Below are positions 4,901 through 60,975 of a stretch of 64,000 bases of DNA, piece by piece. Source of the DNA: Macrostomum hystrix. Taxonomy: Eukaryota; Animalia; Platyhelminthes. Positions within the stretch are counted from its first letter, which is position 1. Every line of letters begins with the position of its first letter. The DNA lies in NCBI GenBank assembly GCA_950097015.1, contig CATNEN010000007.1, forward strand, positions 9,858,001 to 9,922,000, read 5' to 3'. The notes below the pieces were generated by a model that saw only the letters and a list, made by a program, of their open reading frames with translations, was not told the DNA's origin and did no database searches. Both the position numbers and the translations under genes were made by a program.

Positions 4901-5036
4901 TCTTGTTTTCAGCTTGTGCACAGTGAGGCCTCCAGTGCCAATTTTAATGATTGCATCAGAGCCAGTTTTGATAACGCACGCGCGTACTGATAAGAACTCA
5001 CAGGGAGGCTACCCAGAGGGTAGCGAAGGCAGCTAG
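1942..5036 (+). mobile_element. Nine head-to-tail copies of a ~330-380 bp non-autonomous Helitron (DINE-1/Lep1-like architecture)
   Basis: Each unit has a T(C)..TATACTAAAAATGAAAATC start, a short (TTGC/TTTG)n microsatellite, an AACGGCTCAACCGATTTT core, and a 3' hairpin CTACCC-AGA-GGGTAG followed by CGAAGGCAG-CTAG. Unit ends at 2277, 2616, 2952, 3279, 3624, 3967, 4313, 4693, 5036. Confidence 0.85.
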
Positions 5037-5634
5037 TAATATACTAAAAATGAACTGTTTACTTACTTGGTTGTAATTGATTTTCTCCCGAACGGCTCAA
5101 CCGATTTTCACCATTTCTTCACCAAAATATGCGAAATATGGGCAGAATTTTACACGTATTTTTATTAAGCTTAACTCCATTGCTAAGGGGATTAAATATT
5201 CGAAAAACATGATTTTGTCAAAGGTCAAACCATCTTGGCCTATTGAGAATTTTAACTCACTGCCACTGAATTAGAATTGCATCGTCAAATTGCGCAACAA
5301 CCCCTAGCTGATTGAATTTGAAGCCTGCACTCTGGAGACAAATTGGAAATAAATGTACACAACCAACCGTGAGACTGAGTGTACTCTATTTTCTCACTTC
5401 ATTGTACAAAGCCAGAACTTTGATAATTCATTTTATAAGGCTGATTTTTGCACCCACTAACCAACAGTCGGAATAGCCGATGTGTAGGCACTAGGAATAG
5501 GTTATAGGCCAGGCTAGGGTTCGATTCTGCACTGCGTCAAATCATTTAAACTAATTTTCAGCCAGTAGTGATTGAAGATTATTTTGATTTATTTTTTTCA
5601 TTTCGTAAATAAAATATCATAAATCATAGCAAAT

Positions 5635-7608
5635 CTGAGTTTGAATCATTGCAACAATAGAGTCTAAATCATGGCAAAACCAGAGTCTGAATCATGGCTA
5701 CACCAGCGTTTGAATCATGGCTAAACCAGAGTCTGAATCATGGCTACACCAGAGTTTGAATCATGGCTACACCAGCGTTTGAATCATGGCTAAACCAGAG
5801 TCTGAATCATGGCTACACCAGAGTTTGAATCATGGCTAAACCAGAGTCTGAATCATGGCTACACCAGAGTTTGAATCATGGCTAAACCAGAGTCTGAATC
5901 ATGGCTAAACCAGAGTTTGAATCATGGCTAAACCAGAGTCTGAATCATGGCTAAACCAGAGTCTGAATCATGGCTACACCAGAGTTTGAATCATGGCTAA
6001 ACCAGAGTCTGAATCATGGCTAAACCAGAGTTTGAATCATGGCTAAACCAGAGCTTGAATCATGGCTAAACCAGCGTCTGAATCATGGCTAAACCAGAGC
6101 TTGAATCATGGCTAAACCAGAGTCTGAATCATGGCAAAACCAGAGTCTGAATCATGGCTAAACCAGAGTTTGAATCATGGCTAAACCAGGGTCTGAATCA
6201 TGGCTAAACCAGAGTTTGAATCATGGCTAAACCAGGGTCTGAATCATGGCTAAAACAGAGTTTGAATCATGGCTAAACCAGGGTCTGAATCATGGCTAAA
6301 ACAGAGTTTGAATCATGGCTAAACCAGGGTCTGAATCATGGCTAAACCAGAGTCTGAATCATGGCTAAACCAGGGTCTGAATCATGGCTAAACCAGAGTT
6401 TGCATCATGGCTAAACCAGAGTCTGAATCATGGCTAAACCAGAGTCTGAATCATGGCTAAACCAGAGTTTGAATCATGGCTAAACCAGAGTCTGAATCAT
6501 GGCTAAACCAGAGTCTGAATCATGGCAAAAATAGAGCTTGAATCATGGCTAAACCAGCGTCTGAATCATGGCTAAACCAGAGCTTGAATCATGGCTAAAC
6601 CAGAGTTTGAATCATGGCTAAACCAGAGTCTGAATCATGGCTAAACCAGAGTCTGAATCATGGCTAAACCAGAGTCTGAATCATGGCAAAACCAGAGTCT
6701 GAATCATGGCTAAACCAGAGTTTGAATCATGGCTAAACCAGGGTCTGAATCATGGCTAAAACAGAGTTTAAATCATGGCAAAACCAGAGTCTGAATCATG
6801 GCTAAACCAGAGTTTGAATCATGGCTAAACCAGGGTCTGAATCATGGCTAAACCAGAGTCTGAATCATGGCTAAACCAGAGCCTGAATCATGGCTAAACC
6901 AGAGTCTGAATCATGGCAAAACCAGAGTCTGAATCATGGCTAAAACAGAGTTTAAATCATAGCTAAACCAGCGTCTGAATCATGGCTAAACCAGAGTTTG
7001 AATCATGGCTAAACCAGAGTTAAAATCAGGGCTAAACCAGAGTTAAAATCATGGCTAAACCAGAGTCTGAATCATGGCTAAACCAGAGTCTGAATCATGG
7101 CTAAACCAGAGTCCGAATCATGGCTAAACCAGAGTTTGAATCATGGCTAAACCAGGGTCTGAATCATGGCTAAACCAGAGTCTGAATCATGGCTAAACCA
7201 GAGTCTGAATCATGGCTAAACCAGAGTCTGAATCATGGCAAAACCAGAGTCTGAATCATGGCTAAAACAGAGTTTAAATCATAGCTAAACCAGCGTCTGA
7301 ATCATGGCTAAACCAGAGTTTGAATCATGGCTAAACCAGAGTTAAAATCAGGGCTAAACCAGAGTTAAAATCATGGCTAAACCAGAGTCTGAATCATGGC
7401 TAAACCAGAGTCTGAATCATGGCTAAACCAGAGTCCGAATCATGGCTAAACCAGAGTTTGAATCATGGCTAAACCAGGGTCTGAATCATGGCTAAACCAG
7501 AGTCTGAATCATGGCTAAACCAGAGTTTGAATCATGGCTAAACCAGAGTCTGAATCATGGCTAAACCAGAGTCTGAATCGTAGCCAACTAGAGTTTGAAT
7601 CATGGCAA
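5635..7608. repeat. 23-bp minisatellite (TGAATCATGGCTAAACCAGAGTC)n
   Basis: Direct tandem repeat inside the long Helitron. Confidence 0.95.
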
Positions 7609-7754
7609 AATTTTTCTTTTGTCATTGAATTGAATTTTGAGTTTGTTATCTCATAACGTCATAATGATATATATTTGTATGGTAAATATTTTGCCTAATA
7701 ATCATTTAATTGTTGTTCTTCTCAATTTTCTACAAAAGAAGCTAATATAAAAAT

Positions 7755-9200
7755 TAACTGGGCAACATTGTCAACTGGGCATCATCATCAATAAGGAGTC
7801 CTCATCAAATGGGGGATCATTGTCAACTGGGGGATCATTGTCAACTGGGGGATCATTGTCAACTGGGTGATCATTGTCAACTGGGGGATCATTGTCAACT
7901 GGGGATCATTGTCAACTGGGGGATCATTGTCAACTGTGAGATCATTGTCAACTGGGGGATCATTGTCAACTGGGGGATCATTGTCAACTGGGGGATCATT
8001 GTCAACTGGGGGATCATCATCAACTGGGGGATCATTGTAAACTGGGGGATCATTGTCAACTGTGGGATCATTGTCAACTGGGGGATCATTGTCAACAAGG
8101 GGATCATTGTGAACTGGGGGATCATTGTCAACTGGGGATCATTGTCAACTGGGGGAACATTGTCAACTGGGGGATCATTGTCAACTGGGGGATCATTGTC
8201 AACTGGGTGATCATTGTCAACTGGGGGATCATTGTCAACTGAGGGATCATTGTCAACTGGGGTATCATTATCAACTGGGGGATCATTGTCAACTTGGGAA
8301 TGATTGTCAAATGGGTGTTCATTGTCAACTGGGGGATCATTGTCAACTGGGAGATCATTGTCAACTGGGGGATCATTGTCAACTGGGGGATCATTGTCAA
8401 CTGGGGTATCATTATCAACTGGGGGATCATTGTCAACTTGGGAATGATTGTCAACTGGGGGATCATTGTCAACTGGGGGGATCATTGTCAACTGGGGGAT
8501 CATTGTCAACTGGGTGATCATTGTCAACTTGGGGATCATTGTCATCTGAGGGATCATTGTCAACTGGGGTATCATTATCAACTGGGGATCATTGTCAACT
8601 GGGGGATCATTGTCAACTGGGGGATCATTGTCAACTGGGGGATCATTGTCAACTGGGTGATCATTGTCAACTGGGGGATCATTGTCAACTGGGGGATCAT
8701 GGTCAACTTGGGGATCATTGTCAACTGTGAGATCATTGTCAACTGGGTGATCATTGTCAACTGGGGAATCATTGTCAACTGGGGGATCATTGTAAACTGG
8801 GGGATCATTGTCAACTGTGAGATCATTGTCAACTGGGGGATCATTGTCAACTGGGGGATCATTGTCAACTGGGGGATCATTGTCAACTGGGGGATCATCA
8901 TCAACTGGGGGATCATTGTCAACTGTGGGATCATTGTCATCTGGGGGATCATTGTCAACAAGGGGATCATTGTGAACTGGGGGATCATTGTCAACTGGGG
9001 ATCATTGTCAACTGGGGGTTCATTGTCAACTGGGGGATCATTGTCAACTGGGGGATCATCATCAACTGGGGGATCATTGTCAACTGGGGATCATTGTCAA
9101 CTGGGGGTTCATTGTCAACTGGGGGATCATTGTCAACTGGGGGATCATCATCAACTGGGGGATCATTGTCAACTGGGGGATCATTGTCAACTGGGGGTTT
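7755..9200. repeat. 18-bp minisatellite (GGGGGATCATTGTCAACT)n
   Basis: Direct tandem repeat; source of the GDHCQL/WGIIVN artefact ORFs. Confidence 0.95.
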
Positions 9201-9300
9201 ATTTTAGCTTTAAAAAGCTGTAAATTCAGCTGCTAAACAGTATATACAAGACGAATTAAAAATATTTCTGCTCCCCGAAGGGGGGCAAAACATGCTAGCA

Positions 9301-9323
9301 TCTAATATACTAAAAATGAAAAT

Positions 9324-9360
<37 letters not shown>

Positions 9361-9653
9361 TTGCAATCGACTAGCTCCCGAACGGCTCAACCGATTTTCG
9401 CAATTCCTTCGCCAAAAGATCACAAATGGGCCGGAATCGGTACACGTAATTTTATTAAGCTTAATTCCATTGGCAAGGGGATTAAATATTCGAAAAACAG
9501 TTTTAAATAGGCTTTTCTAATGCATTCTTGTTTTCAGCTTGTGCACAGTGAGGCTCCAGTGCCAATTTTAATGATTGCATCAGAGCCAGTTTTGATAACG
9601 AACTGATTAAGAACTCACAGGGAGGCTACCCAGAGGGTAGCGAAGGCAGCTAG
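9301..9653 (+). mobile_element. Tenth copy of the short non-autonomous Helitron
   Basis: TCTAATATACTAAAAATG start; CTACCCAGAGGGTAG hairpin; CTAG at 9650-9653. Confidence 0.85.
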
Positions 9654-31728: not shown

Positions 31729-34700
31729 ATGGATGTCCAAGGGCCATACAAGGCAACAAAGCTGGTAAGTTAGCCATTTTTTTTACTTTTTTAACATTTT
31801 AGCTTCAACTATCCAGAATTATTTAGCTAATCTTATATCATACATGTGCAACCTCCCAAATCTTAGCCGGCTGTGTGACTTATTTTTTGTTCTATTTACC
31901 ACTTAGTTTGCTCTCATTTGCTCTCTTTTTCTCTCCCCTTTTTCCTTTTCTTCACGCCTTCCTTTTTTGTCCCTTGGTGCCCCCTTTGATTTTTTGCGCT
32001 TGGTCAATTGGTTTTTGTGACTTACCTTGCTTGGCCCTCGTTTCACCTGGCTGGGTCGGCCGGGTGTTGCGCATGTATGATCTTATATTATAATTTTTTA
32101 CAGTATAGCTTAGACAAAAACTCTTTATTTAAATGAATTAAATAAGCTTTGTTGTAAAATATGAAGTTAAAGTATTTTTAGCTAACTAGCTATTGCTAGC
32201 TATAAAAAATAACTAAGCACTGGGATTTTTACCTTAAGGATGCTGTGATTGTGGCATCCAGATATTTAGACGCAACATAATATCATAACTTTAGAAAAAC
32301 AGTGTTTGTGTAATACTAAACCATTATAATTGTCATATAAACAAATATATAATTTTAATTGTCATATAAGAAAATTATATGAATATGATGTATATTTTAA
32401 TTATTAATTATGTTGACTTAACTTTTAACAAAAGTTTTTATTAATCAAATGCTAATTTATTTACATAAAAATTGGTTATTGTAATTTCTGAATTTTCAGA
32501 AAGCTACCTAGACTTTGTGGCATAGGCTTTGTTTACTATTATATTTTCACAATTACTTGGGTACCAACAATAGACATTAAATTAATTCTCTTATAAATAA
32601 ATATCATCATGGGGCTTCCATTCTTTCAACTAAAAAACAAGTTTTAGAATTCTGATACTATGAGGCCTTAAAATGTTGCTGACTTTAAAGCATTAATTTT
32701 CAATTGAATAAGCCACAATCCAACCTTAGGACTGGCAGTGGTCTAGAAATTGCCGGAATATTGCAGTAGCTTTCTGGTAATTAGTAGCCATTATTTTAAG
32801 TTCTATCTTAGTACTATTTTTTGTTTTTTAGTGTGTTTTTTTTCTGTTAACCCATGTGTCATTTGGGGGAAATAAACTAATTTTGTTCTATAAAACATGT
32901 TATGACAAAGTACACAATAATATTAAAACAATAAAACTGAAAATGGGAAGTCCTTAAGTAAAAAGAAAATTCTAGACTTACAATCCAAATTTAATTGCTG
33001 TCCGGGCTGAAATTGAGAAGTGAAGTAATAACTGCTGCAGGCCCAAATCCTGTTGGATTTCTTTTAACCTGTAAAACCCAGTCATTTATTTTCTCGGCCT
33101 GACAACCCTTAACCAATTCGCAGTGGAATGACATCATTCGCACCTTCCGAACGTCGATGCCAGTCGGCCGTCACCGCAAGGGCGTCCGTATCTATGACAA
33201 CTGCTTCCAGGCCTCGGACGCTGTGGACTGGCTGCAGCTGCACCTGAGCAAGAACCCCAGCTTCGGCAGCGACGTCGGCCGGCACCAGGTTGTGCAGCTG
33301 CTGGGCAAGTTTCACAAGAGCGGCGTGTTTCATGATGTGCGCAGCGGAGGTGCAGGAGATTGTGGCAGCGCGGCCAGCAAGTACGACGCCGAGCCGTTCG
33401 AGGATAGCTCCAGCCGGCTTTTCAAGTTCAGCCTGGTGGAGACCACATTGTCACCTCTGAGCGCACACCAGCCAATCACTGCTATGGGTGAGTCTGCGGC
33501 ATATTGGCCCAGATTCAAGCAGAATTTCAGAGGAAAATCTAAATATAATTGAAAGGAATTATATTGAAATCGAAGTGATTGGTTGACTTTTTCGATGGCA
33601 CTATGGCTACATAAATGAATTTTGTGGATCCATCATTAAGATATAATTTATATTATATATAAGCCTACCGAAATTCCAAAAATGGTTTAGTTGCAATAAA
33701 TTTTGAAAACATGTTCTCACATTCAGGCTCATTTTCACAACTTTTTGACAAAAAAGGAATTCTAATTTTCAAAGCAAGAACCTTTCGAGAATTTTAATTC
33801 TCGCGTAGGAAAGTTTACAGCCCATACCAAGTGGCAACACTGTTCCAATCCCTCCGCTCTCCATCACTAACTAGAGCGATCTGTCGGTCGACGCAGCCTC
33901 CGTGCTGGTCCCAGCTGGTCCGGCAGAAAGTCCTCCAGCCTCTCGGCTTCATCGTCTGGCGCCATGTGCGCCACTCCGGTTAGGCGGATGCCGCAGCCAC
34001 GGGAATCTTCGCACCAGCAGCAGAAGCAGCCTCAGCTGAGATCCACTGATCGCCGCAGCGAAAAGGCGTTAGCCGAGGACGACCTGACCTACATCTGGCT
34101 GGACTCTGCGCTGACTCGAATCCGCGAGCTGCTGGAGCTGCGCTCGGTGGACGCTCTCACCGACACCCGGCTGCTCCGCGCCGAGTTCGTCCGGGACAAC
34201 CTGACCGCCGCCGGCCTAGCCGAGCCGGCCGACACCCTGCCGGCCTGGGTGGCCAACGCCGTGCGCTGCCTGGCCCGCTGGCCGGATAGCGGTCTACCCA
34301 GCCTGCCCAGCTACGACGGCTTCGAGCTGGACATCTTCGCCGCCCTGTGCGAGTTTTTTGAAGGTGAAGCCCCAGCTGCTTCTGAATTTGTTGAGTGCTT
34401 TCCCGCCAATTCCTCCCCTCTTCCATATCCTCAGCCAATGCCTCCACTCTTCCATATCCTCAGCCAATTCCTCCAATCTTCCATATCCTCAGCCAATGCC
34501 TCCACTCTTCCATATCCTCAGCCAATGCCTCCACTCTTCCATATCCTCAGCCAATTCCTCCACTCTTCCATATCCTCAGCCAATGCCTCCACTCTTCCAT
34601 ATCCTCAGCCAATTCCTCCACTCTTCCATATCCTCAGCCAATTCCTCCACTTTTCCAGATCCTCAGCCAATTCCTCCACTCTTCCATATCCTCAGCCAAT

Positions 34701-36312
34701 TCCTCCACTCTTCCATATCCTCAGCCAATGCCTCTGCTCTCTCAGATTTATATTCCAGGTGATTACTCCCTGAACCGCCCACCTCCTCCATGAGCAGGCC
34801 GTGACCCGGATCCACTGGTGCCGTGCGAGCTGCGCGACCTTTTCGTCAACGTGCTCGCCCTGGCAGACAATCTGGCCGGTGAGCGAGCTGCCCGCGACGC
34901 CGCCGCTCGTCGCAGGCAGCGAAGGCGACTTCGCCGGCATCAGCAGCGTGACTGTCGCCTCGGAGGCCGCGGCCTGGACAGCCTGGGCAGCCTGGCAATG
35001 ACCAGCAGCTGCGCTGAGATCATGCGTCAGCTTGCTGCACCTCCGGCTGCCGCAGAAGCAGACGGAAGCATTATGGGAGCTGGCTGCAGCGCCGACACGG
35101 AGCTGTCACTTCTGCACCAGCCTCGCTGTCGCCGACCGCGAGTCTGCCACAGCGACTGTGAGTTTGACGATATCGACGACGAAGACGATGTAGACGATCC
35201 GGCGGCTGCTGAAGATGCCAACGTCGGCGGTAGCCGCCTTCGCCGCCTCCGACGCTCGCCGCTTCGTCGCAGTGCGGCCTCCGAAGCGGATGGATTAGGC
35301 GACGACTTTCTGCGCGACGATTTCGGCGCCGCTGCCGCTTCCGACGGCTTCTGTGGCGACATTCACCCCATTGACGGCGACAGCCTGCTGGCTTCCGGCC
35401 TCCAGCTCGCTACGCTGTTCCTGCCGCCTAACCGGCGCCGCCGCCTGCACCAGCTTCTGCGGGCCATGCACAAACTGAGCGCCAATCAGCGCCTGCGGCT
35501 GGACCCCCTGCTGCCCACCCCGCATGTGGTGAGTGAACCCCGTGGCATTGACAACCTTCATACTGTTCAGCAAAAATTGCCAGATTCGATAAATAACAAT
35601 TTCATCATCCTCTTATCCACAGGTACTGCACTCTCTGGCTGCATGCGTCCTGCGCCGTCCAGATGAAGGTCGTCAGTCCCAGCAGCCGCCGGACGTGTTT
35701 GCGCTGCAGCTGGTGTCCTTTATGACCGATCATTATTCGGTGATCTTCCGGCCGCCTGCGGATCTGCGCGACTGCGTGGAGGCCCGGCTGGCTGCGGTGC
35801 GGGACCTGCAGCTGGTAAATATGGTCATGCGGGCTAATTCAGATTTGTTTGAATGATCTCTGATGACCACACTTATCCAAGTGAGCACACACAGCTCATC
35901 CCGCATCGTATCTACCGCGCAGTCTCGCCAGGCCAGCTCAGCGGCTGCTGCATCGGCTTCCGCCAGCTCCGCTGACCCGTCTCCCCCAGCTGCGCCGACC
36001 TGGCGCCAGCAGCAGCAGCAGCAGCAGTACTGCAGCCGCATCCCAGCCGAGCAGTTCTCCCTGTCCGGCCGGCTGGCCTCAGACCAGGCGCTGCTGGACC
36101 TGTTGGAGGGCCTGATGTCAGACGAGAACCTGCCGGCCAGGGAGAAGCGCCGCAAGCTGCGTCTGTTCAAGGAGTCGCACCCGCACGTGTACGCGGCCCG
36201 CTTCCCCGACCCTGAAGTTGAGCGTTCGGTGCTGGACAGCCTCCGCGGCCCGCCAGCGGCGCCGGGCCTTCTGAGCCGTACCCTCGCTGCGCTGAAGAAC
36301 TGGCGCCTCTAG
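31729..36312 (+). CDS. DEPDC1: DEP domain-containing protein 1 (DEP plus RhoGAP-like); exons 31729-31764, 33124-33487, 33875-34363, 34798-35528, 35623-35814, ~35923-36312
   Basis: MDVQGPYKATKL|WNDIIRTFRTSMPVGRHR..NCFQASDAVDWL matches the DEPDC1 N-terminus. PLVPCELRDLFVNVL, LFLPPNRRRRLHQLLRAM, LVSFMTDHY and EKRRKLRLFKESHPHVYAARFP match its C-terminal part. All junctions are GT-AG and phase-consistent. Confidence 0.9.
34410..34735. repeat. 29-bp intronic minisatellite (CCTCCACTCTTCCATATCCTCAGCCAATG)n
   Basis: Direct tandem repeat within DEPDC1 intron 3. Confidence 0.95.
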
Positions 36313-41280: not shown

Positions 41281-41989
41281 CGCGCGGCAGGGATTCCAGC
41301 TTAGCGGGACTGCTAGCAGAGTGGCCCTAAAGCTATGACTTCAATTGTGTGACTCAACGCTTAAAGCGCATTGCTAATCTTGAATAGCTATTTCAAGAGC
41401 AAATAGGATTAAACGACTTGAAAGCCAGAAATTATGATCCTAAATCAGCAGCATTCACCCAATCCTCCGCAGCACCGCTTCTCCCTTTTTTCTCCTTTTC
41501 CTCGCAACGCGCGCACAATGCCCCCCATCAACATTAGTTCGCAGCTGACTCATAAATCTCATAGTACTCGTTTTTTTGAGAGAATTCTTTCCAGCACACT
41601 TCAGTTAGCTTAAATATATAGCTTTTCTGCCTCCGTTCCTTATTTAATTTATTGTTTTCAACTGATCGGCACTGTGAGAACTCAACCCTAAAGCGCTCCC
41701 GTTGAGCTCATTTTGAGTGGCTTATTGAATCAGACGTTCGCGTGGGTAATGCGCTAATTCCATGCACACCTGAAGCGTTCCTTGCTAGAAAGTTGCTTTG
41801 ACGTCTATGAGTTGAACAAATCACTCGGTGGAACGGACTGGAAAGTTTTTGAGTCTGTGTGCCAGCTGCTGCAGCGTCTTCTGTTTTCCCTGCTACTCTC
41901 AGCGCCGACGAAGCTGCTTCTGTGGTTGCTTGTTCCGCTTCCGCTGAGAGCTTCGCTACATCTGCTGCTACCTTTACTGCTTGCGCCGG

Positions 41990-42230
41990 TGCTTCTGCTG
42001 GCGCTTCTGCTGTTGCATTTTCTGTTGCAACTGCTGTTGTTTCTGCTGGTGCTTTTGCTGGTGCTTCTACTGGCGCTTCTGCTGTTGCATTTTCTGTTGC
42101 AACTGCTGTTGTTTCTGCTGGTGCTTTTGCTGGTGCTTCTACTGGCGCTTCTGCTGTTGCATTTTCTGTTGCAACTGTTGTTGTTTCTGCTGGTGCTTCC
42201 GCTGGTGCTTCTACTGGCGCTTCTGCTGCT
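41990..42230. repeat. 72-bp tandem repeat (~3 copies), possibly exonic
   Basis: Open in two minus-strand frames (AEAPVEAPAKAPAETTAVATENAT and SRSASRSTSKSTSRNNSSCNRKCN). Confidence 0.85.
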
Positions 42231-42454
42231 TTCGCTGCTGCAGCTGCTTCGAGTGCAGCTTTCACTGCCGTTCAGCTGGTCATCTGACTCATCCGTCTGC
42301 AGCATCAAGCCGTCTGCGTAAGAGGCGGTGGCCACCTCCTGACTGACCAAGCTGCCACTGCTGCCGCCGACACCACCGATGTCAACGAAATGCGGGTTTT
42401 TTAAGGAGATTACTAGCGGATACCTGCTGAACTCCTGGCCGGGACTCTGGGATT

Positions 42455-42897
42455 TTGGATTCTGTTGTAATCGCTGGTTGGGATTCTGCGGAATCGGTGG
42501 TTGGGATTCTGAGAAATCGGTGGTTGGGATTCTGTGGAATCGGTGGTTGGGATTCTGCGGAATCGGTGGTTGGGATTCTGTGGAATCGTTGGTTGGGATT
42601 CTGCGGAATCGGTGGTTGGGATTCTGAGAAATCGGTGGTTGGGATTCTGTGGAATCGGTGGTTGGGATTCTGCGGAATCGGTGGTTGGGATTCTGCGGAA
42701 TCTGTGGTTGGGATTCTGTGGAATCGGTGGTTGGGATTCTGCGGAATCTGTGGTTGGGATTCTGAGAAATCGGTGGTTGGGATTCTGTGGAATCGTTGGT
42801 TGGGATTCTGCGGAATCGGTGGTTGGGATTCTGTGGAATCGGTGGTTGGGATTCTGTGGAATCAGTGGTTGGGATTCTGTGGAATATGTGGATTCTG
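42455..42897. repeat. 23-bp minisatellite (GGTGGTTGGGATTCTGTGGAATC)n
   Basis: Direct tandem repeat. Confidence 0.95.
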
Positions 42898-43166
42898 ACG
42901 AATCTTATTAAAAAGGCTGTTCGAGTCTCACCAGTCGGTGCGCGTGTTCCAGTCGGGCATGCAGTTGCTGCAGGTGTACCAGGTGCCGGCGTCGGCACTG
43001 AAATCGTTAATAATTAATCTAAGCTAATCTAATCTAAGTACAAAATAGCTGGCTGCTGAGGTAGCGGCATGCAGTCATCGCTGAGCCGATTGCATATGGA
43101 GTAACGCACCTGGCACATTTCTAAGTTTTCATTTGTTTGTCTCGCTATAATGAACGTTTTAATGAG

Positions 43167-43711: not shown

Positions 43712-46167
43712 TCACCTGTTCAGCATCTGCCGGCTGCCGTCACTGCAGTTCATGCCGACAATCCGGCGCCTGGGTCGGCGACGTCGAATCAGACGCTTCC
43801 GTTGCCGGATTTGCCGCTTCAGAAGCTTTCGGCGCAGCCGGGTCGGGCGCTCAGATTCCTCGATTCGCTCGAAGTCGAGGCTCATGTCGATGTGCCCGCT
43901 GCACATCGGCCTGCCGAACTGGTCGATGATGTACTCCCAGCCCAGCAGGCACCCGCACAGGCTGCACATGAAGCATTCCGGGTGGCGCAGCGTCGTATGG
44001 CAGCGGTCCGTCAGCTGAATGGCCTCGCCAATGAGCTGGCAGCCGCAGACGGCGCAGAAGGCAGCCTGTGGATGATGCGCCGGGCACAGCGGCTGTTTAT
44101 TCTCGTCCAGGACCAGGCCGGGCTCGAATCTGAGCACGGTGCCGCAGGAGGGCACGCTGCAGAACAGGTGGTGCGGGTGAAATGCCCGGCCGTTCAACTC
44201 CACCTGCGGTGTCATTTGAGAGGCCGAGTTCAGGCAAAAACCTTCTTAAACAGTCTGCTAAGACTTTAGCATCTTGAAAACATTAATTTCATGAGTGCGC
44301 CGAATCTTCAATACCACATTATTTTCACATTCTCAGGCTTTGACTAATGCAAAGATTTTCACTAGCTCCCACCAATTCCCTTCATTTGCACAAACTCTTC
44401 AACGCTCAGGCTCAGTCACGAATGACTCACAGACAGGAAAACCGCCCAGATTTTTCAACCATGCGACTCATTTACAGTACAATAGATTTCTGCTCAAACT
44501 TGTGAAAGGCGTCTCAACTGAGTCGCGTGCTAGTTGAGCTGAAAGAAGGCTGAGCAGCACTTTCGTCTGAAAACATACGTGCTCCAAATAGCCCTGGTGG
44601 CGCCGCTGCTGCTGCTCACTCAGAAATTCATAAGCAGTATAGTGAACACAGGTAGTGATTGGCACTAGACCAGAGCAGAATTTACATTTTCGACATGCTG
44701 GGCGGTTTCAGGGCTCCAGCTCAATCCTAAATTGCCTGGTCCCCAGCCCGGAACAAGAAGACGCGGGACTGCCTGCGCGGTCAGGAATGTCGGTGGCTAC
44801 AGAGCTGGCAGCTCGTGCAGAGAAAGGGAGTCGGGTGCAGGAAACCGAGCCATTAACTGCGTTTTTTGATTTGTCAACTAAATCTCAAATTATGATGAGT
44901 TTCTGAATTTCACACTCCGACTCACAGTTCCACCCTCCCATAGACCACGCCATCCCACAGTCCCCGCCTTTCCACAGCCACAGTCCCCGCCCTTCCACAG
45001 TCCCCGCCCTCCCACAGTCCCCGCCTTTCCACAGTCCGCGCCCTCTACAGTCCCCGCCCTCCCACAGTCCCCGCCCTCCCACAGTCCCCGCCTTTCCACA
45101 GTCCCCGCCCTCCCACAGTCCCCGCCCTCCCACAGTCCCCGCCCTCCCACAGTCCCCGCCTTTCCACAGTCCCCGCCCTCCCACAGTCCCCGCCCTCCCA
45201 CAGTCCCCGCCCTCCTACAGTCCCCGCCCTCCCACAGTCCCCGCCCTCCCACAGTCCCCGCCTTTCCACAGTCCCCGCCTTTCCACAGTCCCCGCCTTTC
45301 CACAGTCCCCGCCTTTCCACAGTCCCCGCCTTTCCACAGTCCCCGCCCTCCCACAGTCCCCGCCTTTCCACAGTCCCCGCCCTCCCACAGTCCCCGCCCT
45401 CCCACAGTCCCCGCCCTCCCACAGTCCCCGCCCTCCCACAGTCCCCGCCATCCCACAGTCCCCGCCCTCCCACAGTCCCCGCCCTCCCACAGTCCCCGCC
45501 TTTCCACAGTCCCCGCCTTTCCACAGTCCCCGCCTTTCCACAGTCCCCGCCTTTCCACAGTCCCCGCCTTTCCACAGTCCCCGCCTTTCCACAGTCCCCG
45601 CCTTTCAACAGTCCCCGCCCTTCCACAGTCCCCGCCCTCCCACAGTCCCCGCCCTCCCACAATTCCGACGATCCCACAGTTTCCGCCATCCCACAGTTCC
45701 GCCCTCTGACAGTTCCGCCATCCCACAGTCCCGCCATCCCACAGTCCCCGCCATCCCACAGTTTCGCCGTCCAACAGTCCCCTGGATATGTGCTCAAAGC
45801 TCACCCAGCTCTTTCCGTTGTCGATGGGGCTGCCGCAGTAGGCGCACATGGTCAGCAGGCGGAAGCAGTGCTGGCAGCAGATCCGGTTGCCGATTCGGAA
45901 GACGCGCATGCCAAGCATCATAACGCAGCATGTGCAACACCGGAAGCACTCGATGTGACATGCCATGAGGTCGGTGCGGATGAACTGGTCACCGGTTATC
46001 ACTTCCTTGCAGAAGTTACAGCGGCTGCCGCCGTTAACACTCGAACCCAAGCCGACAGAGGGTCCTATGGCCCAAACTGACCCAGGCTGCGGTGAATTCA
46101 TTATAAAATGCTGCTGCTGCTGAGGCGGCATAGCCACGAGTTGGGACGTTTGCTGCCCATCAAGCAT
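43712..46167 (-). CDS. LIM-domain protein with three LIM domains (exons 46167-45805 and 44203-43716/43712; further 3' exons possible)
   Basis: CNFC..HIECFRCCTC..CCQHC; CAYC..W|VELNGRAFHPHHLFCSVPSC..LCPAH (split by a phase-0 GT-AG intron); CAVC..HPECFMCSLC..MCSGH. Confidence 0.8.
44950..45770. repeat. 17-bp GC-rich intronic minisatellite (CAGTCCCCGCCCTCCCA)n
   Basis: Direct tandem repeat just downstream of the LIM exon-1 donor. Confidence 0.95.
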
Positions 46168-46334
46168 ATTGCCGCATTACACTTATTTTTAACCCTTTGC
46201 TTTGCTCTATAAGCTTCAAGTACTTTAGTCTATGGCTCGAAGTTATTTTGGTAGCAGTCAGGAGGAAATGATGGGAGAAAAATTCCTTATTATGGTACCG
46301 TTATTCAGGCACGCATGTAGCAAAAGAGGGCTTT

Positions 46335-46775
46335 ACCACTGAGGGAGAGTTTCGAATAATTCTGAAGGAACTCTGAGTTGAGTGAAAGAACACTGTAGGA
46401 GAGTTTCGAATAATTCTGAAGGAACTCTGAGTTGAGTGAAAGAACACTGTAGGAGAGTTTCGAATAATTCTGAAGGAACTCTGAGTTGAGTGAAAGAACA
46501 CTGTAGGAGAGTTTCGAATAATTCTGAAGGAACTCTGAGGGAGAGTTTCGCGTAATCCTGAAGGAACACTGAGGGAGAGTTTCCACACTAGCCTGAAGGA
46601 ACACTGAAAGAGAGTTTTGCATTATTCTGAAGGAACACTGAGGGAGAGTTTCGCGTAATCCTGAAGGAACACTGAGGGAGAGTTTCCACACTAGCCTGAA
46701 GGAACACTGAAAGAGGGTTTTGCATTATCCTGAGGGAACACTGAGGGAGAGTTTCGCACAAGCCGGAAGGACCAG
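46335..46775. repeat. 54-bp / ~33-bp composite tandem repeat (GAGAGTTTC...CTGAAGGAAC)
   Basis: Direct tandem repeat. Confidence 0.85.
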
Positions 46776-47855: not shown

Positions 47856-49387
47856 TCAGTGTTGCCTGTTGAGCAGTCGGTCAATGAGGCCATGCAGGGC
47901 TTCACTGGCGGGCACAGCGGGCAGCTGGCTGAGCTGCCAGTGCGCCTCGCGGCAGTGCAGCTGGGCCAGCATGCGGGTCTGACCGACGCCGTCAGCGCGG
48001 GCCACGCTGTCCAGGGCCAGCTGAAGGTCGCCCGGTCGGGAGAGCCGGCGGCCAACAGCTTCTCTGAGCTGCGGGCAGGTCTGCATGGCGAACAGTACCG
48101 GGCCAGTCAGGACACCGCGGCGCAGGTCGGCGGCACCAGCGGGTTTGCCCAGCTGACTGTCGGAGGCTTCAAAATCAAGGAGATCGTCTACCTGGGCATG
48201 GGAGAACAGTTTGGCAAAAGTTTTAATTGGTAAAAGTTTGAGAAAGGCAGGACATTGCTGAAGATTATGAGCAACTGCAAAAAATCAGCCTGGTAGGTGG
48301 TTGGTAAATAGAGAGTCTTCATCTGGACTCAAGAGTGGTGCATGAAATCATCACGAAGTTGGCCCCAGTAACTAATTTGCAATACCCCCCGAAAGGCTTG
48401 TCAGGCAACCCACCAGCTGAAATGCCATCCCAATGCTGCGGCCCAGCTCAAATGCAGCGGCCGCCATGGCCGGGCCGGAGGCCGGGGCGAGCACAGCGGC
48501 GCACTTTGCCGAGTGGGCCAGCAGGGCGGCGGTCTTGCGGTAGGTCCTGGCCAAGTAGCGGCCGAGGTCGCCAGTCTCGCCCAGCTGGTCCAGCTCGCCA
48601 CGCACCAGGTCGCTGATGGCGGTGGCCATGCCGCGGATGACGAGCGGGTGGCCGGTGCCGGCCAGCAGTTGGGAGGCCACGCCTATCATGTGATCACCGG
48701 CTAGGACGGCGTCCCGATGGCCGAAGCGGCTCTGCACAGAGGCGGCGCCGCGGCGCAGGTCGGAGCCGTCAATCAGGTCGTCGTGCACCAGTGATGCCGA
48801 GTGGATCATTTCTGTTACCATAGCGACTGTGCGCTGACGCTGACAGGCTGGCCGGCCGGCGTTGCACACGTGCGACACCAGGAGGACGAGCAGTGGCCGG
48901 ACTAGCTTGCCTGGAGCGTCCAAGTGATGCCGCATCATGAGGCCGAGTCGGTCAGGAACATTGGCCGGCGCGAGTCGGACGCGTATGTCGCTTGCTAATG
49001 CTGCGGTCTCGGCCTGAAGATCGGCTAGCAGGCGCTCGGACGCTGTAGCCGCCGTTGGGGGATTCGCAGAAGACGTGGATGCATCTCGCATTATGCTGAC
49101 TTGGGCGCGGCCTGGGATACCCGTGCAGAGGCGGCGGGCGCAGTTAGCACAGATGCCAAGCCTGTAGAAATGAGCAATAGAAGCGACACGCATAATATAA
49201 AAAGAAGGCGACAACATTTCTAAATCCAGATTAATGTTTTCGCAACACGGACAGTCAGTGTAATTGAAGCTTGACCTCACGTTTGGTCGGAATAGCGTAT
49301 ATGTCTAAGCATCATTTTACCCGTTTAAAAAAAGTTACACTATATCTCAAGTAGGACTTAGGAGCTATTCACTCACCTTGAGTACAT
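47856..49387 (-). CDS. PDSS1: Trans-prenyl (decaprenyl) diphosphate synthase subunit 1; exons 49387-49377, 49161-48414, 48191-47856
   Basis: GKLVRP, EMIHSASLVHDDLIDGSDLRRG (FARM), KTAALL, GMAFQL|VDDLLDF (SARM), LGKP. An 11-nt first coding exon gives MYSRLGICANCARRLC, a mitochondrial-presequence-like start. Confidence 0.88.
48285..48354 (-). ncRNA. C/D box snoRNA, copy 1 (18S guide CATGCACCAC; SNORD32/snR40-like target)
   Basis: Box C GTGATGA, C'-like ATGAAGA, box D CTGA; lies in the last PDSS1 intron; guide complementary to conserved 18S GUGGUGCAUG. Confidence 0.8.
49255..49315 (-). ncRNA. C/D box snoRNA with a SNORD54-like guide (ATATACGCTATT)
   Basis: C-like ATGATGC; guide ATATACGCTATT followed by D'-like CCGA (complement of conserved 18S AAUAGCGUAUAU); C'-like GTGAGGT; D box CTGA; intronic. 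Confidence 0.7.
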
Positions 49388-54517: not shown

Positions 54518-55591
54518 ACAGAGGCGATTTTCACAGACAGCACGTTATTTATCGCGATCGAACTTTTTAGGCACCATGACAACAAAAATATATGTAAGTA
54601 TAAAATATAACCGACTCAATTACTCAAATATCTACCAAAATTTTACATTAGGAGTGCTTTCTTTGGAATAAAATCTGCATTTTAAATAAATTTAAGCTGC
54701 TGTCATGGCTAGTCGAAGACATTGCAAAAGAACTAAAAGAATTGCTAATACGCAATTAGCAAAAATGCGCAATGATAAATTTTAGTGCTGCTCAGCACCG
54801 CACCAGCATGTATATCATGATTTATAAATTAGACGATTCGTCAAAATTTGTGCCAAAAGAACGATGGCAGCAGGTTTTCTCACTTAAAACTTATCCGTAT
54901 AACCCAGGAAAATAGTAATTGTACATTGCGTACTGGCTGCATGGCAACTCGCCATCATTGCGGATTTGAGTACTGCTCACTTACTCAGAGCTGCTGTCAT
55001 CAGCTTTGCCTGTGCAGGAACAAGTACAAAAACTAAAGATCTGAAAGGCAACCGATCTAATTTACGGCACAATGAGCAAATGGGTATGGAATGCATCCTA
55101 AACTTTTACTTTTACTTTTCATGTTGACGAATGTATAAAAAGCCAAAATGTAACAAAAAAACTGACTACAGAAAAGTCTATAATGCGTTGCGAACACCAA
55201 AAAGAGAAAGTCGCAGAAAAATCAATAAAGAGATAGAATAGAAAGTGATTCCTACATTAATTACTAGGCAGAAAATGCTAAAGCCTCTAACAGGCTTGCT
55301 ACTTTACTGGGATAAATATATAGCAAGTTTAAAGTCGTCAGTGATACAGATCAGGCGATCAAAAACTGAATAACGTTCAACACGGGCTCCCTTAATTCCA
55401 GCACAGCTGCTGCTTAACAAATCTGCTAATCAACGCCAAGTCACTGGGAGCCAAAGATAAATGTATCCGACAAGAGATTAAGAAAGGATCAAATTGAACA
55501 GTGGTGACAGACGGAAGGTAGTGAGAACAGAAGTGCCAAGCAGCGGAGACAAGTGAGGCTGGGATCCAGTGGGACGATCGCAGAGAAGCTG

Positions 55592-58021
55592 CTAGCTGCT
55601 GCAGTCTTGAACCTCCTCGGTCTTGCAGTCGTCAGTCGGCACTGGCAGCAGGGCCTCCTGCGGCTTCTCCTGGTAGTCCCCAGCAGCAGTGACAGTCTTC
55701 TGCTGCTCCTCGAGGAACAGGGAGCGCGATGGCGCGGCCTCCAGCTCCTCCTGGGTGAGCACGCGCACAGCGTACTCGCCATCGATGTCAGCCAGTCCGT
55801 GTACCTCCACCGGCTTGTTGCCCTTCAGCAGGCGGGCCAGGTAGGACGTGATTGGCGGTGTAATCACCTGGCCAGGAACCAGCACCGGGATGCCGGGCGG
55901 GTAGGCCAGCACCTGGTCGCAGCAGACGCGGCCGTTCAGCGCTGTGTTCGGTCTGAGGGGGAGAGGGCGGATGCCGGGCTGCATGAAGTGCCGGATGCAG
56001 GAGTTGCTGAGGCAGCATCAAGGTTCCGTTCCGTTGCTGAAGCAGCAAGTTATTGATCAGCGAGTTATTAATAAAATCAGTCAACCCACCGTCCGTCATC
56101 GTCCAGCAGGTAGAGGAGCTCGCCAGACTCATAGAAGGCGTTTCGCGGCAGGCAGGCCAGCCGGCTGAAGTGTGGCACCTCGGCCATGCGGTAGGACTGC
56201 TTGGGCGCGCGGCGTCGGTCCTTGGCCAGGCGCAGCATGGCGTCGCATAGGCGAGACACTTTGCTGCGCGTGGTGCCAACGCCTAGCAGCAGCGTCAGCG
56301 TACTGAATGTCGACTTCTCGCCCTGGATGTTGAACCGATCGAACAGAATCTGCAGTGCGGATAGTTTCGAAGAATTTTTTAAATCAGTTCACGCTACATG
56401 AAGCCATGGTCTATTCGCACTCTGCAGTTCTTTAACTGTACGAGTACCTGCTGCAGTTCGTCAGCGCTGTAGCCCGACTTGGAAATGTCCACGGTTAGCT
56501 TGGTCGGATCCAAACGAACGCTGTCGTTGCGGACCTCGTCTGGCAGCAGGTCGTCAATGTCCAGCACTCGGAACACGCCTGTGGAGTTGATCTTCTGGCG
56601 CAGCTCGGTGGCCAGCTTGAGCGTGCGGTCAAGCAGCTTGTAGCCCTCCATCACGGCCTGCTTCCGGCCGACGTCCAGGCTGGCGATGAGAGCGTACTGC
56701 GGACTTGTTGATGCGTACATGTTAAAGTTCTCACGGAAGAGGTGCTCGTCAAAGTCCGGATCATTGACGTGGACCATGCTGGCCTGGGAGAAGGACGTCA
56801 GCGTCTTATGGATGCTCTGTGTGACGTAGTCGGCTCCGCACTCCAGGGCTGTAGGCCGAAAGGCCGGGTGAAAGCGAGCAAATGCGTACCAGGCCTCGTC
56901 TATGATCACCTGCGAAAATTTTTATTGATGAACTCTATGTGAGTCAATGTTAAGCCCATCTATTCAACGGAGCGAGAAGACCAGAAGAGAACAAAGATTG
57001 GGAGTACCAAAGATCTCACCTTAATTCCCGCCTTGTGAGCAGCCTCTATGATAGGCTTGAGGTCGTACAGCATGCCATCGTAGGTGCAGCAGGTGAGAAT
57101 GAGCGCCTTAGCATCCGGGTTCTCCTCGATAGCGCGAAAAATGGTGGCCTTTGGCACTGGGCCGAAGATACCGAACTCACGGCAGACGGAGGAGTCAAGG
57201 TACACGGGCCGGGCGTCTGCCAGGATGACGCCGTGATGGACGGACTTGTGGCAGTTGCGGTCCAGAAGCAGCTTGTCACCCGGAGTAAGCAAAGTTTGGA
57301 AGATGATCTTGTTGGTGGTGGAGGTGCCGTTGGTGGCGAGGTAGGTCTTGCGAGCGCCAAAGGCCTTGGCGGCCAGAGCCTGCGCGGTGGCGATGACACC
57401 AGTTGGGTGCAGCAGCGAGTCCAGCATGGGCACGGACACGGACAGGTCGGCGCGGAGAAGGTTCTCGCCGACAAACTCATAAAAGTCGCTGACCCAGGGC
57501 GAGTTCTTCAGCGAGTCGCCGCCAGAGTGGCCGGGCGAATGCCAGGAGTCCTTGGCCATGCGCACGTAGGACTGCAGAGCGTCGTAGAATGGCGTGGCCG
57601 ATTTCTCGGCAAGCTCGGCGGACAAAATGCGGAACCAGCCGTGGTAGTCGGGCTCGTCCCGGTCAAAGTAGCCGTCAACGGCGTGACTCACGAGCTCCTC
57701 CACCATGGCTCGCTCGTCATCGCTAAGCACAACGTAAAGCGACAGCTCTGGCCGCCAGGTATTGATTCGGTTGGCGAGGTTCAAGGCCGCCTGGCAATCG
57801 CCGGCACTGGCCAGCGACTTGTCGATCACCACAAGCTGCAGGTCGCCGTCGGCCTTGACCGTCAGCATTGCTTCGTCAGCGGTATGCGCGGACACGAAGG
57901 AGATGCCAAACGGGTTGTCAAGGCGGTCGATGGCCGAGGCCAGGCCAGTCAGCGTCGGCTCCAGCCAACTGGCGTCGCTACTTACCATCAGGACGCGGCT
58001 CACCGGTTTCAGCGAAGGCAT
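55592..58021 (-). CDS. Bacterial-type Orn/Lys/Arg decarboxylase (PLP fold type I with N-terminal receiver-like wing domain), 694 aa; exons 58021-57020, 56909-56448, 56349-56090, 55952-55592
   Basis: Motifs HSPGHSGG, TNGTSTTN, DRNCHKS, CTYDG, DEAW, TQSIHK (PLP lysine), STSPQY, LDPTKLT and YPPGIPVLVPG. Three GT-AG introns (110, 98 and 137 bp) restore one continuous frame. Confidence 0.93.
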
Positions 58022-58114
58022 CAGGATCGCAGTCTCTGCTGTGGGACCGGGGCAGGTTGAAAAACGATTTCATTTCCAAGCTGCTTATTGGCACAGGTTC
58101 TCAAGGTAGTATGT

Positions 58115-60975
58115 ATCAGGGTAGCTACTGTTTCTGCTAACATCAGAGTGGCTACTGTTTCTGCTAACATCAGGGTGGCTACTGTTTCTGTTAACATCAG
58201 GGTGGCTACTGTTTCTGCTAACGTCAGGGTGGCTACTGTTTCTGCTAACATCAGGGTGGCTACTGTTTCTGCTAACATCAGGGTGGCTACTGTTTCTGCT
58301 AACGTCAGGGTGGCTACTGTTTCTGCTAACATCAGAGTGGCTACTGTTTCTGCTAACATCAGGGTGGCTACTGTTTCTGCTAACATCAGGGTGGCTACTG
58401 TTTCTGCTAACGTCAGGGTGGCTACTGTTTCTGCTAACATCAGCGTGGCTACTGTTTCTGCTAACATCAGGGTAGCTACTGTTTCTGCTAACATCAGGGT
58501 GGCTACTGTTTCTGCTAACATCAGGGTGGCTACTGTTTCTGCTAACATCAGGGTAGCTACTGTTTCTGCTGACATCAGGGTGGCTACTGTTTCTGCTAAC
58601 ATCAGGGTAGCTACTGTTTCTGCTAACATCAGGGTGGCTACTGTTTCTGCTAACATCAGGGTGGCTACTGTTTCTGCTAACGTCAGGGTGGCTACTGTTT
58701 CTGCTAACATCAGCGTGGCTACTGTTTCTGCTAACATCAGGGTAGCTACTGTTTCTGCTAACATCAGGGTGGCTACTGTTTCTGCTAACATCAGAGTGGC
58801 TACTGTTTCTGCTAACATCAGGGTGGCTACTGTTTCTGTTAACATCAGGGTGGCTACTGTTTCTGCTAACATCAGGGTGGCTACTGTTTCTGCTAACGTC
58901 AGGGTGGCTACTGTTTCTGCTAACATCAGCGTGGCTACTGTTTCTGCTGACATCAGGGTGGCTACTGTTTCTGCTAACATCAGGGTGGCTACTGTTTCTG
59001 CTAACATCAGCGTGGCTACTGTTTCTGCTGACATCAGGGTGGCTACTGTTTCTGCTAACATCAGAGTGGCTACTGTTTCTGCTAACATCAGAGTGGCTAC
59101 TGTTTCTGCTAACATCAGGGTGGCTACTGTTTCTGCTAACATCAGGGTGGCTACTGTTTCTGTTAACATCAGGGTGGCTACTGTTTCTGCTAACGTCAGG
59201 GTGGCTACTGTTTCTGCTAACATCAGGGTGGCTACTGTTTCTGCTAACATCAGGGTGGCTACTGTTTCTGCTAACATCAGGGTGGCTACTGTTTCTGCTG
59301 ACATCAGGGTGGCTACTGTTTCTGCTAACATCAGGGTGGCTACTGTTTCTGCTAACATCAGGGTGGCTACTGTTTCTGCTAACATCAGGGTGGCTACTGT
59401 TTCTGCTAACGTCAGGGTGGCTACTGTTTCTGCTAACATCAGGGTGGCTACTGTTTCTGCTAACATCAGGGTGGCTACTGTTTCTGCTAACATCAGAGTG
59501 GCTACTGTTTCTGCTGACATCAGGGTGGCTACTGTTTCTGCTAACATCAGGGTGGCTACTGTTTCTGCTAACATCAGGGTGGCTACTGTTTCTGCTAACA
59601 TCAGGGTGGCTACTGTTTCTGCTAACGTCAGGGTGGCTACTGTTTCTGCTAACATCAGGGTGGCTACTGTTTCTGCTAACATCAGGGTGGCTACTGTTTC
59701 TGCTAACATCAGGGTGGCTACTGTTTCTGCTAACATCAGGGTGGCTACTGTTTCTGCTAACGTCAGGGTGGCTACTGTTTCTGCTGACATCAGGGTGGCT
59801 ACTGTTTCTGCTAACGTCAGGGTGGCTACTGTTTCTGCTAACATCAGGGTGGCTACTGTTTCTGCTAACATCAGAGTGGCTACTGTTTCTGCTAACATCA
59901 GGGTGGCTACTGTTTCTGCTAACATCAGGGTGGCTACTGTTTCTGCTAACATCAGGGTAGCTACTGTTTCTGCTGACATCAGGGTGGCTACTGTTTCTGC
60001 TAACATCAGAGTGGCTACTGTTTCTGCTAACATCAGGGTGGCTACTGTTTCTGTTAACATCAGGGTGGCTACTGTTTCTGCTAACATCAGGGTGGCTACT
60101 GTTTCTGCTAACATCAGCGTGGCTACTGTTTCTGCTAACGTCAGGGTGGCTACTGTTTCTGCTAACATCAGAGTGGCTACTGTTTCTGCTAACATCAGGG
60201 TGGCTACTGTTTCTGCTAACGTCAGGGTGGCTACTGTTTCTGCTAACATCAGCGTGGCTACTGTTTCTGCTAACATCAGGGTGGCTACTGTTTCTGCTAA
60301 CATCAGGGTGGCTACTGTTTCTGCTAACATCAGGGTGGCTACTGTTTCTGCTAACATCAGAGTGGCTACTGTTTCTGCTAACATCAGAGTGGCTACTGTT
60401 TCTGCTAACATCAGGGTGGCTACTGTTTCTGCTAACATCAGAGTGGCTACTGTTTCTGCTAACATCAGGGTAGCTACTGTTTCTGCTAACATCAGGGTGG
60501 CTACTGTTTCTGCTAACATCAGGGTGGCTACTGTTTCTGCTAACATCAGGGTAGCTACTGTTTCTACTAACATCAGAGTGGCTACTGTTTCTGCTAACAT
60601 CAGGGTAGCTACTGTTTCTGCTAACATCAGGGTGGCTACTGTTTCTGCTAACATCAGGGTGGCTACTGTTTCTGCTAACATCAGGGTAGCTACTGTTTCT
60701 GCTAACATCAGGGTGGCTACTGTTTCTGCTAACATCAGGGTGGCTACTGTTTCTGCTAACATCAGGGTGGCTACTGTTTCTGCTAACATCAGGGTGGCTA
60801 CTGTTTCTGCTAACATCAGGGTGGCTACTGTTTCTGCTAACATCAGGGTGGCTACTGTTTCTGCTAACATCAGGGTAGCTACTGTTTCTGCTAACATCAG
60901 GGTAGCTACTGTTTCTGCTAACATCAGGGTAGCTACTGTTTCTACTAACATCAGGGTGGCTACTGTTTCTACTAG
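58115..60975. repeat. 27-bp satellite (CAGGGTGGCTACTGTTTCTGCTAACAT)n, ~105 copies
   Basis: Highly homogeneous direct tandem repeat. Confidence 0.97.

Follow-up and report, generated by a model that had tools for sequence, protein, structure and literature searches.

A spliced flatworm gene of probable betaproteobacterial origin for a wing-domain decarboxylase in Macrostomum hystrix

We analysed a 64,000-nt stretch of the genome of the flatworm Macrostomum hystrix (hereafter the window; 9.86–9.92 Mb of contig C7 in a host assembly of 220 Mb and 42 contigs), which carries on its minus strand a four-exon gene for a bacterial-type decarboxylase dependent on pyridoxal 5'-phosphate (PLP). The evidence makes it highly probable that the gene resides in the flatworm's nuclear genome, is expressed, and came from Betaproteobacteria through one old transfer, after which it was duplicated, furnished with introns separately in each copy and retained as an enzyme. 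In the history that we propose, an intronless gene for a ~650-aa wing-domain PLP decarboxylase of the aspartate aminotransferase (AAT) fold would have passed from a betaproteobacterium to a Macrostomum ancestor, the donor being nearest to present Chromobacteriaceae (Aquitalea, Chromobacterium, Gulbenkiania) and the transfer older than the split between M. hystrix and Macrostomum lignano. Duplication would have followed, with spliceosomal introns gained by each copy independently; the window copy would in addition have come under spliced-leader (SL) trans-splicing and been extended by a short, disordered tail at its C terminus, and purifying selection would have acted on both copies, leaving every catalytic residue intact.

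Gene structure and transcripts

The reading frame runs from 58021 to 55592 on the minus strand and encodes 694 aa in 4 exons, intact in both the sequence and the list of open reading frames (ORFs); its three introns are all GT..AG (Table 1). A sequence-only reading of the window had described precisely this frame with three phase-consistent GT-AG introns, and the sequence, the ORFs and spliced contigs bear it out. The motifs quoted in that reading were all found, DRNCHKS, RVLMVSSD, DLQLVVID and LSLYVVL in exon 1 and the others (DEAW, TQSIHK, YPPGIP) in the exons given in Table 1. Searches with the window gene were run exon by exon, with its M. lignano ortholog P0410 (692 aa) serving as the full-length stand-in. 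Exon 1 (223 bits, E 7e-66) and exon 2 (92.5 bits, E 3e-26) matched PF01276 (OKR_DC_1) above its curated cut-off of 27, and exon 4 matched PF03711 (OKR_DC_1_C) above its cut-off of 24.2 (32.2 bits, E 1.5e-7); the Pfam search by exon did not detect PF03709 in exon 1.

Ten public sequencing runs contain the window stretch; from three of them, X2 of study P1 and X3 and X4 of study P2, contigs were aligned to 55000–58080. Each of these three runs yielded one contig of 1.9–2.0 kb that jumps from 55952 to 56090, from 56349 to 56448 and from 56909 to 57020, which are exactly the predicted introns, and all three jumps read CT..AC on the plus strand. Runs X2–X8 contain ~0.70–0.78 of the sampled words of the stretch, which is close to the proportion of the query that is exonic. 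X2, X3 and X4 each gave a second contig, which covers 57422–58039 and then continues into 23–24 nt foreign to the locus, in mRNA sense CTGCGAAGACTCAATTTATTGCAT. This leader 24-mer revealed 52 genome occurrences at no more than 1 mismatch, versus 0 for the reversed control; its copies stand just before GGTAAG (leader gene ...TTGCATG/GTAAG, the slash marking the junction), with an Sm-like site and a stem-loop further on, the arrangement of SL-RNA-like genes. SL trans-splicing has been documented in Macrostomum (PMC10468722).

At the junction itself (58039–58041), the contigs read ...TTGCAT/CAGAGAC versus ...TTGCATG/GTAAG in the SL genes, so that the final G is missing and the two are offset by one base. 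In the literature, the leader probably ends in ATG; an SL gene variant TTGCAT/GTAAG, which could explain the offset, was sought in the genome and none was found. The SL sequence also recurs with a period of 11.6–11.7 kb on the small contigs C15, C17 and C42, which suggests that SL RNA genes may lie within a long, tandemly repeated unit, perhaps in an array of ribosomal DNA type.

Table 1 Features of the decarboxylase gene in the window (UTR, untranslated region; CDS, coding sequence; REC, receiver).
Feature	Position	Strand	Description
AG acceptor for SL trans-splicing	58040..58041	-	contigs of X2, X3, X4
5' UTR	58022..58039	-	18 nt, SL junction to ATG; sequence and contigs
Exon 1 CDS	57020..58021	-	334 aa; REC-like wing, linker and first half of PLP domain; Pfam OKR_DC_1
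Intron 1	56910..57019	-	110 nt, GT..AG, phase 0, 40% GC; skipped in contigs of 3 runs
Exon 2 CDS	56448..56909	-	154 aa; DEAW and PLP-lysine motif TQSIHK; Pfam OKR_DC_1
Intron 2	56350..56447	-	98 nt, GT..AG, phase 0; skipped in contigs
Exon 3 CDS	56090..56349	-	86 codons + 2 nt; 90.7% identity to P0410 residues 489-574
Intron 3	55953..56089	-	137 nt, GT..AG, phase 2; skipped in contigs
Exon 4 CDS	55592..55952	-	1 nt + 119 codons + stop (55592-55594); OKR_DC_1_C with YPPGIP, then tail
3' UTR (approximate)	55074..55591	-	contig ends at 55074, 55182, 55210

Copies, bacterial relatives and origin

The closest named proteins to the window gene are those of M. lignano. P0410 (UniRef A0A1I8HZQ0) is 91.6, 94.8, 90.7 and 83.0% identical to window exons 1–4, respectively, and is represented in M. 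lignano by 3 near-identical copies, named 'hypothetical protein Mlig029890', on contigs of 197–369 kb. M. hystrix itself has a second copy on contig C41 (C41:2996000-3005999, about 4943–9602 therein) with 5 exons and 4 GT-AG introns, two of which are filled with minisatellites. The C41 copy has its own M. lignano ortholog, A0A1I8HG80 (P0298), at 96% identity, and is ~82% identical to the window gene in the exon-1 region.

The intron positions of the two copies were compared. The C41 paralog has two phase 2 introns, after aa 67 and within K330, and two phase 0 introns, after aa 418 and aa 518, whereas those of the window gene fall at aa 334/335, 488/489 and 575; 0 positions are common to both, and the closest pair lies 13 nt apart in different phases. 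Because the two intron sets do not overlap, the simplest history would have the introns gained after the transfer, separately in each copy.

We then turn to the bacterial relatives, which are numerous. When 1.84 billion representatives were scanned with exon 1 by profile-free HMMER, 4943 relatives were returned; among the best of them, those with names are Burkholderiales or Pseudomonadota, and the others are metagenome or Logan sequences. The protein search with exon 1 gave Ideonella and Burkholderiales as best matches (57–66% over the whole exon), and the search with P0298 gave M. lignano first, followed by Chromobacterium, Aquitalea, Gulbenkiania, Vogesella and Pseudogulbenkiania, all of 652 aa and 77–83% identity; a search with P0002 returned only near-identical proteins of Burkholderiales metagenome-assembled genomes (MAGs). 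Aligned with the 652-aa Chromobacterium and Aquitalea proteins, window exon 1 showed 72–76% identity over 332 aa with zero gaps, worm residue 4 corresponding to bacterial residue 1 at the start of the alignment and the sequences being collinear from there. Among the best 120 matches of each of two protein searches (exon 1 and P0298), the only named eukaryote was M. lignano.

A maximum-likelihood (ML) tree was computed for the exon-1 region (55 rows, 332 columns, LG+C20+F+G4, 1000 ultrafast bootstraps), leaving out 22 long-branch distant representatives of a 77-row set; supports are given as ultrafast bootstrap (UFboot)/Shimodaira–Hasegawa-like approximate likelihood ratio test (SH-aLRT). The window gene grouped with P0410 (100/99), the C41 copy with P0298 (100/99) and all four together (100/96), and the four Macrostomum rows were monophyletic in 100% of 200 bootstrap trees. 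Their clade is sister (96/96) to two 652-aa Logan-assembly proteins, P0411 and P0412, and the combined group lies in the midst of sequences from Chromobacteriaceae and Burkholderiales. Quick trees of the 77 and 55 rows agree with this careful ML tree. P0411 was also scanned against genome and metagenome contigs, where none was closer than 81%.

The tree and the non-shared introns together argue for one betaproteobacterial transfer, a duplication before the M. lignano split, and separate intron gains; the donors would be freshwater Betaproteobacteria. The sequence-only reading had proposed that the gene moved from a bacterium to an animal, gained introns there and is no contamination, with an ML phylogeny as a check. 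Its proposal is upheld by the spliced SL transcripts, by the M. lignano orthologs and by the position of the Macrostomum clade, nested among Betaproteobacteria in the exon-1 region. Present in two host species, located in host chromatin and nested in the donor clade, the gene has these attributes of a domesticated transfer.

Other histories were weighed against the same data. Two separate transfers from related bacteria, one for the C7 and one for the C41 copy, would account for the lack of common intron positions and for an identity of only ~82% in the exon-1 region, but the monophyly of the Macrostomum rows (UFboot 100, SH-aLRT 96, and every one of the 200 bootstrap trees) makes this improbable. 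We consider vertical inheritance from an early eukaryote or animal ancestor, with loss almost everywhere else, very improbable: some eukaryotes do have members of the IPR000310/OKR_DC_1 family, e.g. Plasmodium and Toxoplasma (PMC13506015), but the worm gene is 72–76% identical to, and nested with support in, one shallow betaproteobacterial subclade, its paralogs have no introns in common, as expected of an intronless ancestor, and M. lignano is the only named eukaryote among the best 120 matches.

Similarly, there is very little to be said for a transcribed relic without an enzymatic role. The frame is intact over four exons, two species and two paralogous lines have kept the gene, and dN/dS between the window gene and the C41 paralog was 0.19 (261 codons) and 0.03 (84 codons). 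A 45-sequence alignment of the family has 47 invariant columns; all 47 are preserved in the window gene, among them the PLP lysine K369 of TQSIHK, and 46 in the C41 copy. The best reading of these data is that both copies would be under purifying selection and retained as an active enzyme.

The surroundings of the gene are those of a host locus. Neighbouring frames in the window carry polyprenyl-synthetase, LIM, DEP and EF-hand domains and are eukaryotic-type genes, so that the part of the sequence-only reading that placed the gene among eukaryotic neighbours stands; the intronic small nucleolar RNAs that it assigned to PDSS1 were not confirmed, since Rfam at gathering thresholds detected no RNA family anywhere in the 64-kb window, including the PDSS1-like gene around 48372–49280. 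The G+C content at third codon positions (GC3) of the window gene is 0.79, versus 0.70–0.83 in its host neighbours and 0.71–0.86 in the bacterial homologs, and because these ranges overlap base composition is uninformative as to host or donor. Bacterial contamination or an assembly chimera would fit the high similarity to Chromobacteriaceae proteins and a GC3 inside the bacterial range, but is reduced to a negligible chance by the three spliceosomal introns removed in contigs that also carry a flatworm spliced leader, the C7 location among eukaryotic-type genes, the C41 paralog with four other introns, the 92% identical orthologs in an independent M. lignano assembly, and a GC3 that equally matches that of the host neighbours.

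Several points weigh against a betaproteobacterial origin with retained enzymatic function. The runs with spliced contigs are recorded as kind '?' or 'DNA?', not RNA, and we take them to be transcript assemblies because their contigs lack introns. The tree covers the exon-1 region alone; the absence from other animals is drawn from only the best 120 matches of two protein searches; and the bacterial origin of the sister proteins P0411 and P0412 is assumed from their length of 652 aa and their contigs of 16–24 kb. As for function, the names in this family predict it poorly, because the closest solved relative, Rv2531c, is annotated as a lysine/ornithine/arginine (Lys/Orn/Arg) decarboxylase and yet uses glutamate (PMC13506015).

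Enzyme family and probable substrate

We modelled the ortholog P0410 with AlphaFold, using the 45-sequence alignment as input, which gave a predicted local distance difference test score (pLDDT) of 88.5 and a predicted template modelling score (pTM) of 0.88. Five beta-alpha units at residues 8–120, with pLDDT mostly >90, form a REC/flavodoxin-like wing, the segment that had been described from sequence as receiver-like; next come the PLP and C-terminal domains and, from about residue 662 on, a disordered tail (pLDDT <50). Foldseek aligned the model full-length to Rv2531c, LdcI, AdiA, LdcF, LdcC, LdcA and the Lactobacillus ornithine decarboxylase (ODC). TQSIHK aligns to the HK of Rv2531c, LdcA, LdcC and LdcI. 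The window gene is a long, wing-containing AAT-fold member of the OKR_DC_1 superfamily.

Its nearest counterparts are the betaproteobacterial OKR_DC_1 proteins of 645–667 aa (Chromobacterium, Aquitalea, Vogesella, Gulbenkiania, Ideonella and Burkholderiales MAGs), which are of the same length class and domain order as the worm protein and have all invariant residues in common with it. Introns, an SL acceptor and eukaryotic flanks set the worm genes apart from these 652-aa relatives. The window copy differs further by its disordered C-terminal tail of ~40 aa, which is absent from the bacterial proteins and from the C41 paralog (ending in ...GLFE and a stop codon). The bacterial relatives go under several annotations, namely 'aminotransferase class I/II-fold PLP-dependent enzyme', 'ornithine decarboxylase' and 'arginine decarboxylase'.

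Comparison with well-known decarboxylases revealed a common architecture at low sequence identity. LdcI/LdcC, AdiA and SpeC/SpeF of E. coli and LdcA of P. aeruginosa have the same wing, PLP and C-terminal domains as the worm protein, and the S-x-H-K PLP lysine and the FSQASM segment are common to all; LdcI and AdiA are decamers, a dimer-based oligomer. The P0410 model aligned full-length with the wing-domain Lys/Arg/Orn decarboxylases at template modelling (TM) scores of 0.6–0.65, but at only about 22–26% identity. The NCBIfam models for LdcC, CadA, AdiA and SpeC/SpeF have cut-offs of 794–1310 bits, which were reached neither by P0410 (200–244 bits) nor by a Chromobacterium relative (within 200–250 bits) nor by the bacterial relative P0413; matches of single window exons to these models were likewise all sub-threshold.

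In the Chromobacterium, Aquitalea, Vogesella and Ideonella genomes (4/4), a second, longer OKR_DC_1 gene is present in addition to the 652-aa one. The longer paralog of Chromobacterium (783 aa) scored 590–650 bits on the Ldc/Adc models, versus ~250 for the 652-aa family. Since this paralog matches what is expected of the LdcA lineage, which has been described as the ancestral one in Betaproteobacteria (PMC6257575), the transferred 652-aa gene would belong to a different one, and its family looks like a lineage other than the ~750-aa LdcA of Betaproteobacteria and Pseudomonadaceae.

The bacterial gene neighbourhood bears on the substrate. Of 54 bacterial loci whose flanks are complete, ~30 have argF (ornithine carbamoyltransferase) and argG immediately downstream of the gene and in its orientation; argF and argG adjoin the bacterial genes, not the worm gene. 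Chromobacteriaceae, Chitinimonas and several Burkholderiales MAGs show the order decarboxylase-argF-argG, preceded by a DUF3579 gene in the opposite orientation (e.g. L018:5001-9399). The conserved argF-argG neighbourhood hints at ornithine or arginine as the substrate, and could guide functional assignment of the bacterial subfamily.

An active enzyme with a substrate other than Lys, Arg or Orn, for example glutamate as in a 'cloaked' glutamate decarboxylase of the Rv2531c type, is unlikely in our assessment. In its favour, the best PDB match by sequence (276 bits) and by fold (TM 0.72–0.74) is Rv2531c of M. tuberculosis (PDB 9N0O), a glutamate decarboxylase despite its Lys/Orn/Arg annotation (PMC13506015), and the Lys/Arg/Orn subfamily models all stayed below their cut-offs. 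The residues that would bind the gamma-carboxylate are replaced in the worm protein, which argues the other way: R576, which contacts the glutamate gamma-carboxylate in Rv2531c (PMC13506015), corresponds to Ser375, as it does to serine in LdcI, LdcC and LdcA, and R718 aligns to Met and N731 to Glu. Rv2531c (947 aa) also has an extra N-terminal domain, and the worm-type protein (692–694 aa) is without it; of the features of an Rv2531c-type glutamate decarboxylase, the worm protein thus has neither the extra domain nor the Arg at the R576 position. Because these gamma-carboxylate residues are not conserved, the extra domain is absent and the argF-argG synteny points to ornithine or arginine, a basic amino-acid substrate is favoured.

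Accepting a basic substrate, the protein would work like its bacterial relatives and decarboxylate an amino acid linked as a Schiff base to the PLP of the TQSIHK lysine; the substrate would most likely be ornithine or arginine rather than lysine, and the product a diamine. Our estimates, which are not measurements, put ornithine first with somewhat less than an even chance, arginine well behind it, lysine slightly lower again, and any other substrate last.

Polyamine context and surrounding repeats

Animal ODC is a fold type III enzyme with the alanine-racemase fold and is regulated by antizyme. It is unrelated in fold and family to the bacterial-type enzyme of the worm, and the chemistry of the two would possibly be the same if the substrate is ornithine. 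The host genome gave weak above-cut-off matches to the fold-III decarboxylase family (2 loci) and to ODC antizyme (2 loci), and antizyme has been described for M. lignano (PMC1874602). Judging from these sequences, the bacterial-type enzyme would stand beside the canonical animal system, not replace it, and the worm would have gained a decarboxylase structurally unrelated to the antizyme-controlled ODC, plausibly as an added polyamine route. Synthesis of cadaverine, agmatine or putrescine, or acid buffering, may be the contribution of the window enzyme, although nothing in the data pointed to a role in acid stress. More tentatively, Macrostomum might make a diamine (putrescine, agmatine or cadaverine) by a bacterial enzyme that escapes antizyme control, with different roles for the two old copies; such a scheme is possible, if doubtful at present. 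Candidate roles of the two copies include one in the strongly proliferating system of stem cells and germline, or one in the handling of dietary or microbial amino acids.

Full-text literature searches returned no paper describing the gene, Mlig029890 or its bacterial origin, and the M. lignano proteins are listed in public databases as uncharacterised. To our knowledge, well-documented transfers of metabolic enzymes from bacteria to animals are still few, and this one is unusually clean, with a nameable donor group, high identity, a transcript that is both cis- and trans-spliced, and visible intron gain. It has probably brought an AAT-fold decarboxylase from an uncharacterised betaproteobacterial subfamily into an animal, and an activity established for either the worm or the bacterial protein would give thousands of bacterial genes a function. 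M. lignano, in which the gene is conserved, is a laboratory model with RNA interference and transgenesis available, and the system could show whether an animal runs an antizyme-independent diamine route. If diamine synthesis does escape antizyme, the worm would offer a working case of a transferred gene rewiring animal polyamine metabolism.

Run X9, which bears a different organism label, contains 3 short low-depth contigs at least 99% identical to 55000–55460 and 56543–56809, including 267 nt of exon 2. These contigs may represent a close relative, a mislabelled sample or carry-over.

A 27-nt minisatellite at 58115–60974 (~106 copies, 96% matching, unit ATCAGGGTGGCTACTGTTTCTGCTAAC) begins 75 nt upstream of the SL acceptor and yields long spurious ORFs in several frames. 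Elsewhere in the window, tandem peptide repeats form coding-looking frames at 44885–45800, 41800–42900, 34350–34800 and 46300–46700, e.g. GGRGLWEGGDCGRAGTV beside the LIM frame. Minisatellites are very frequent in the M. hystrix genome.

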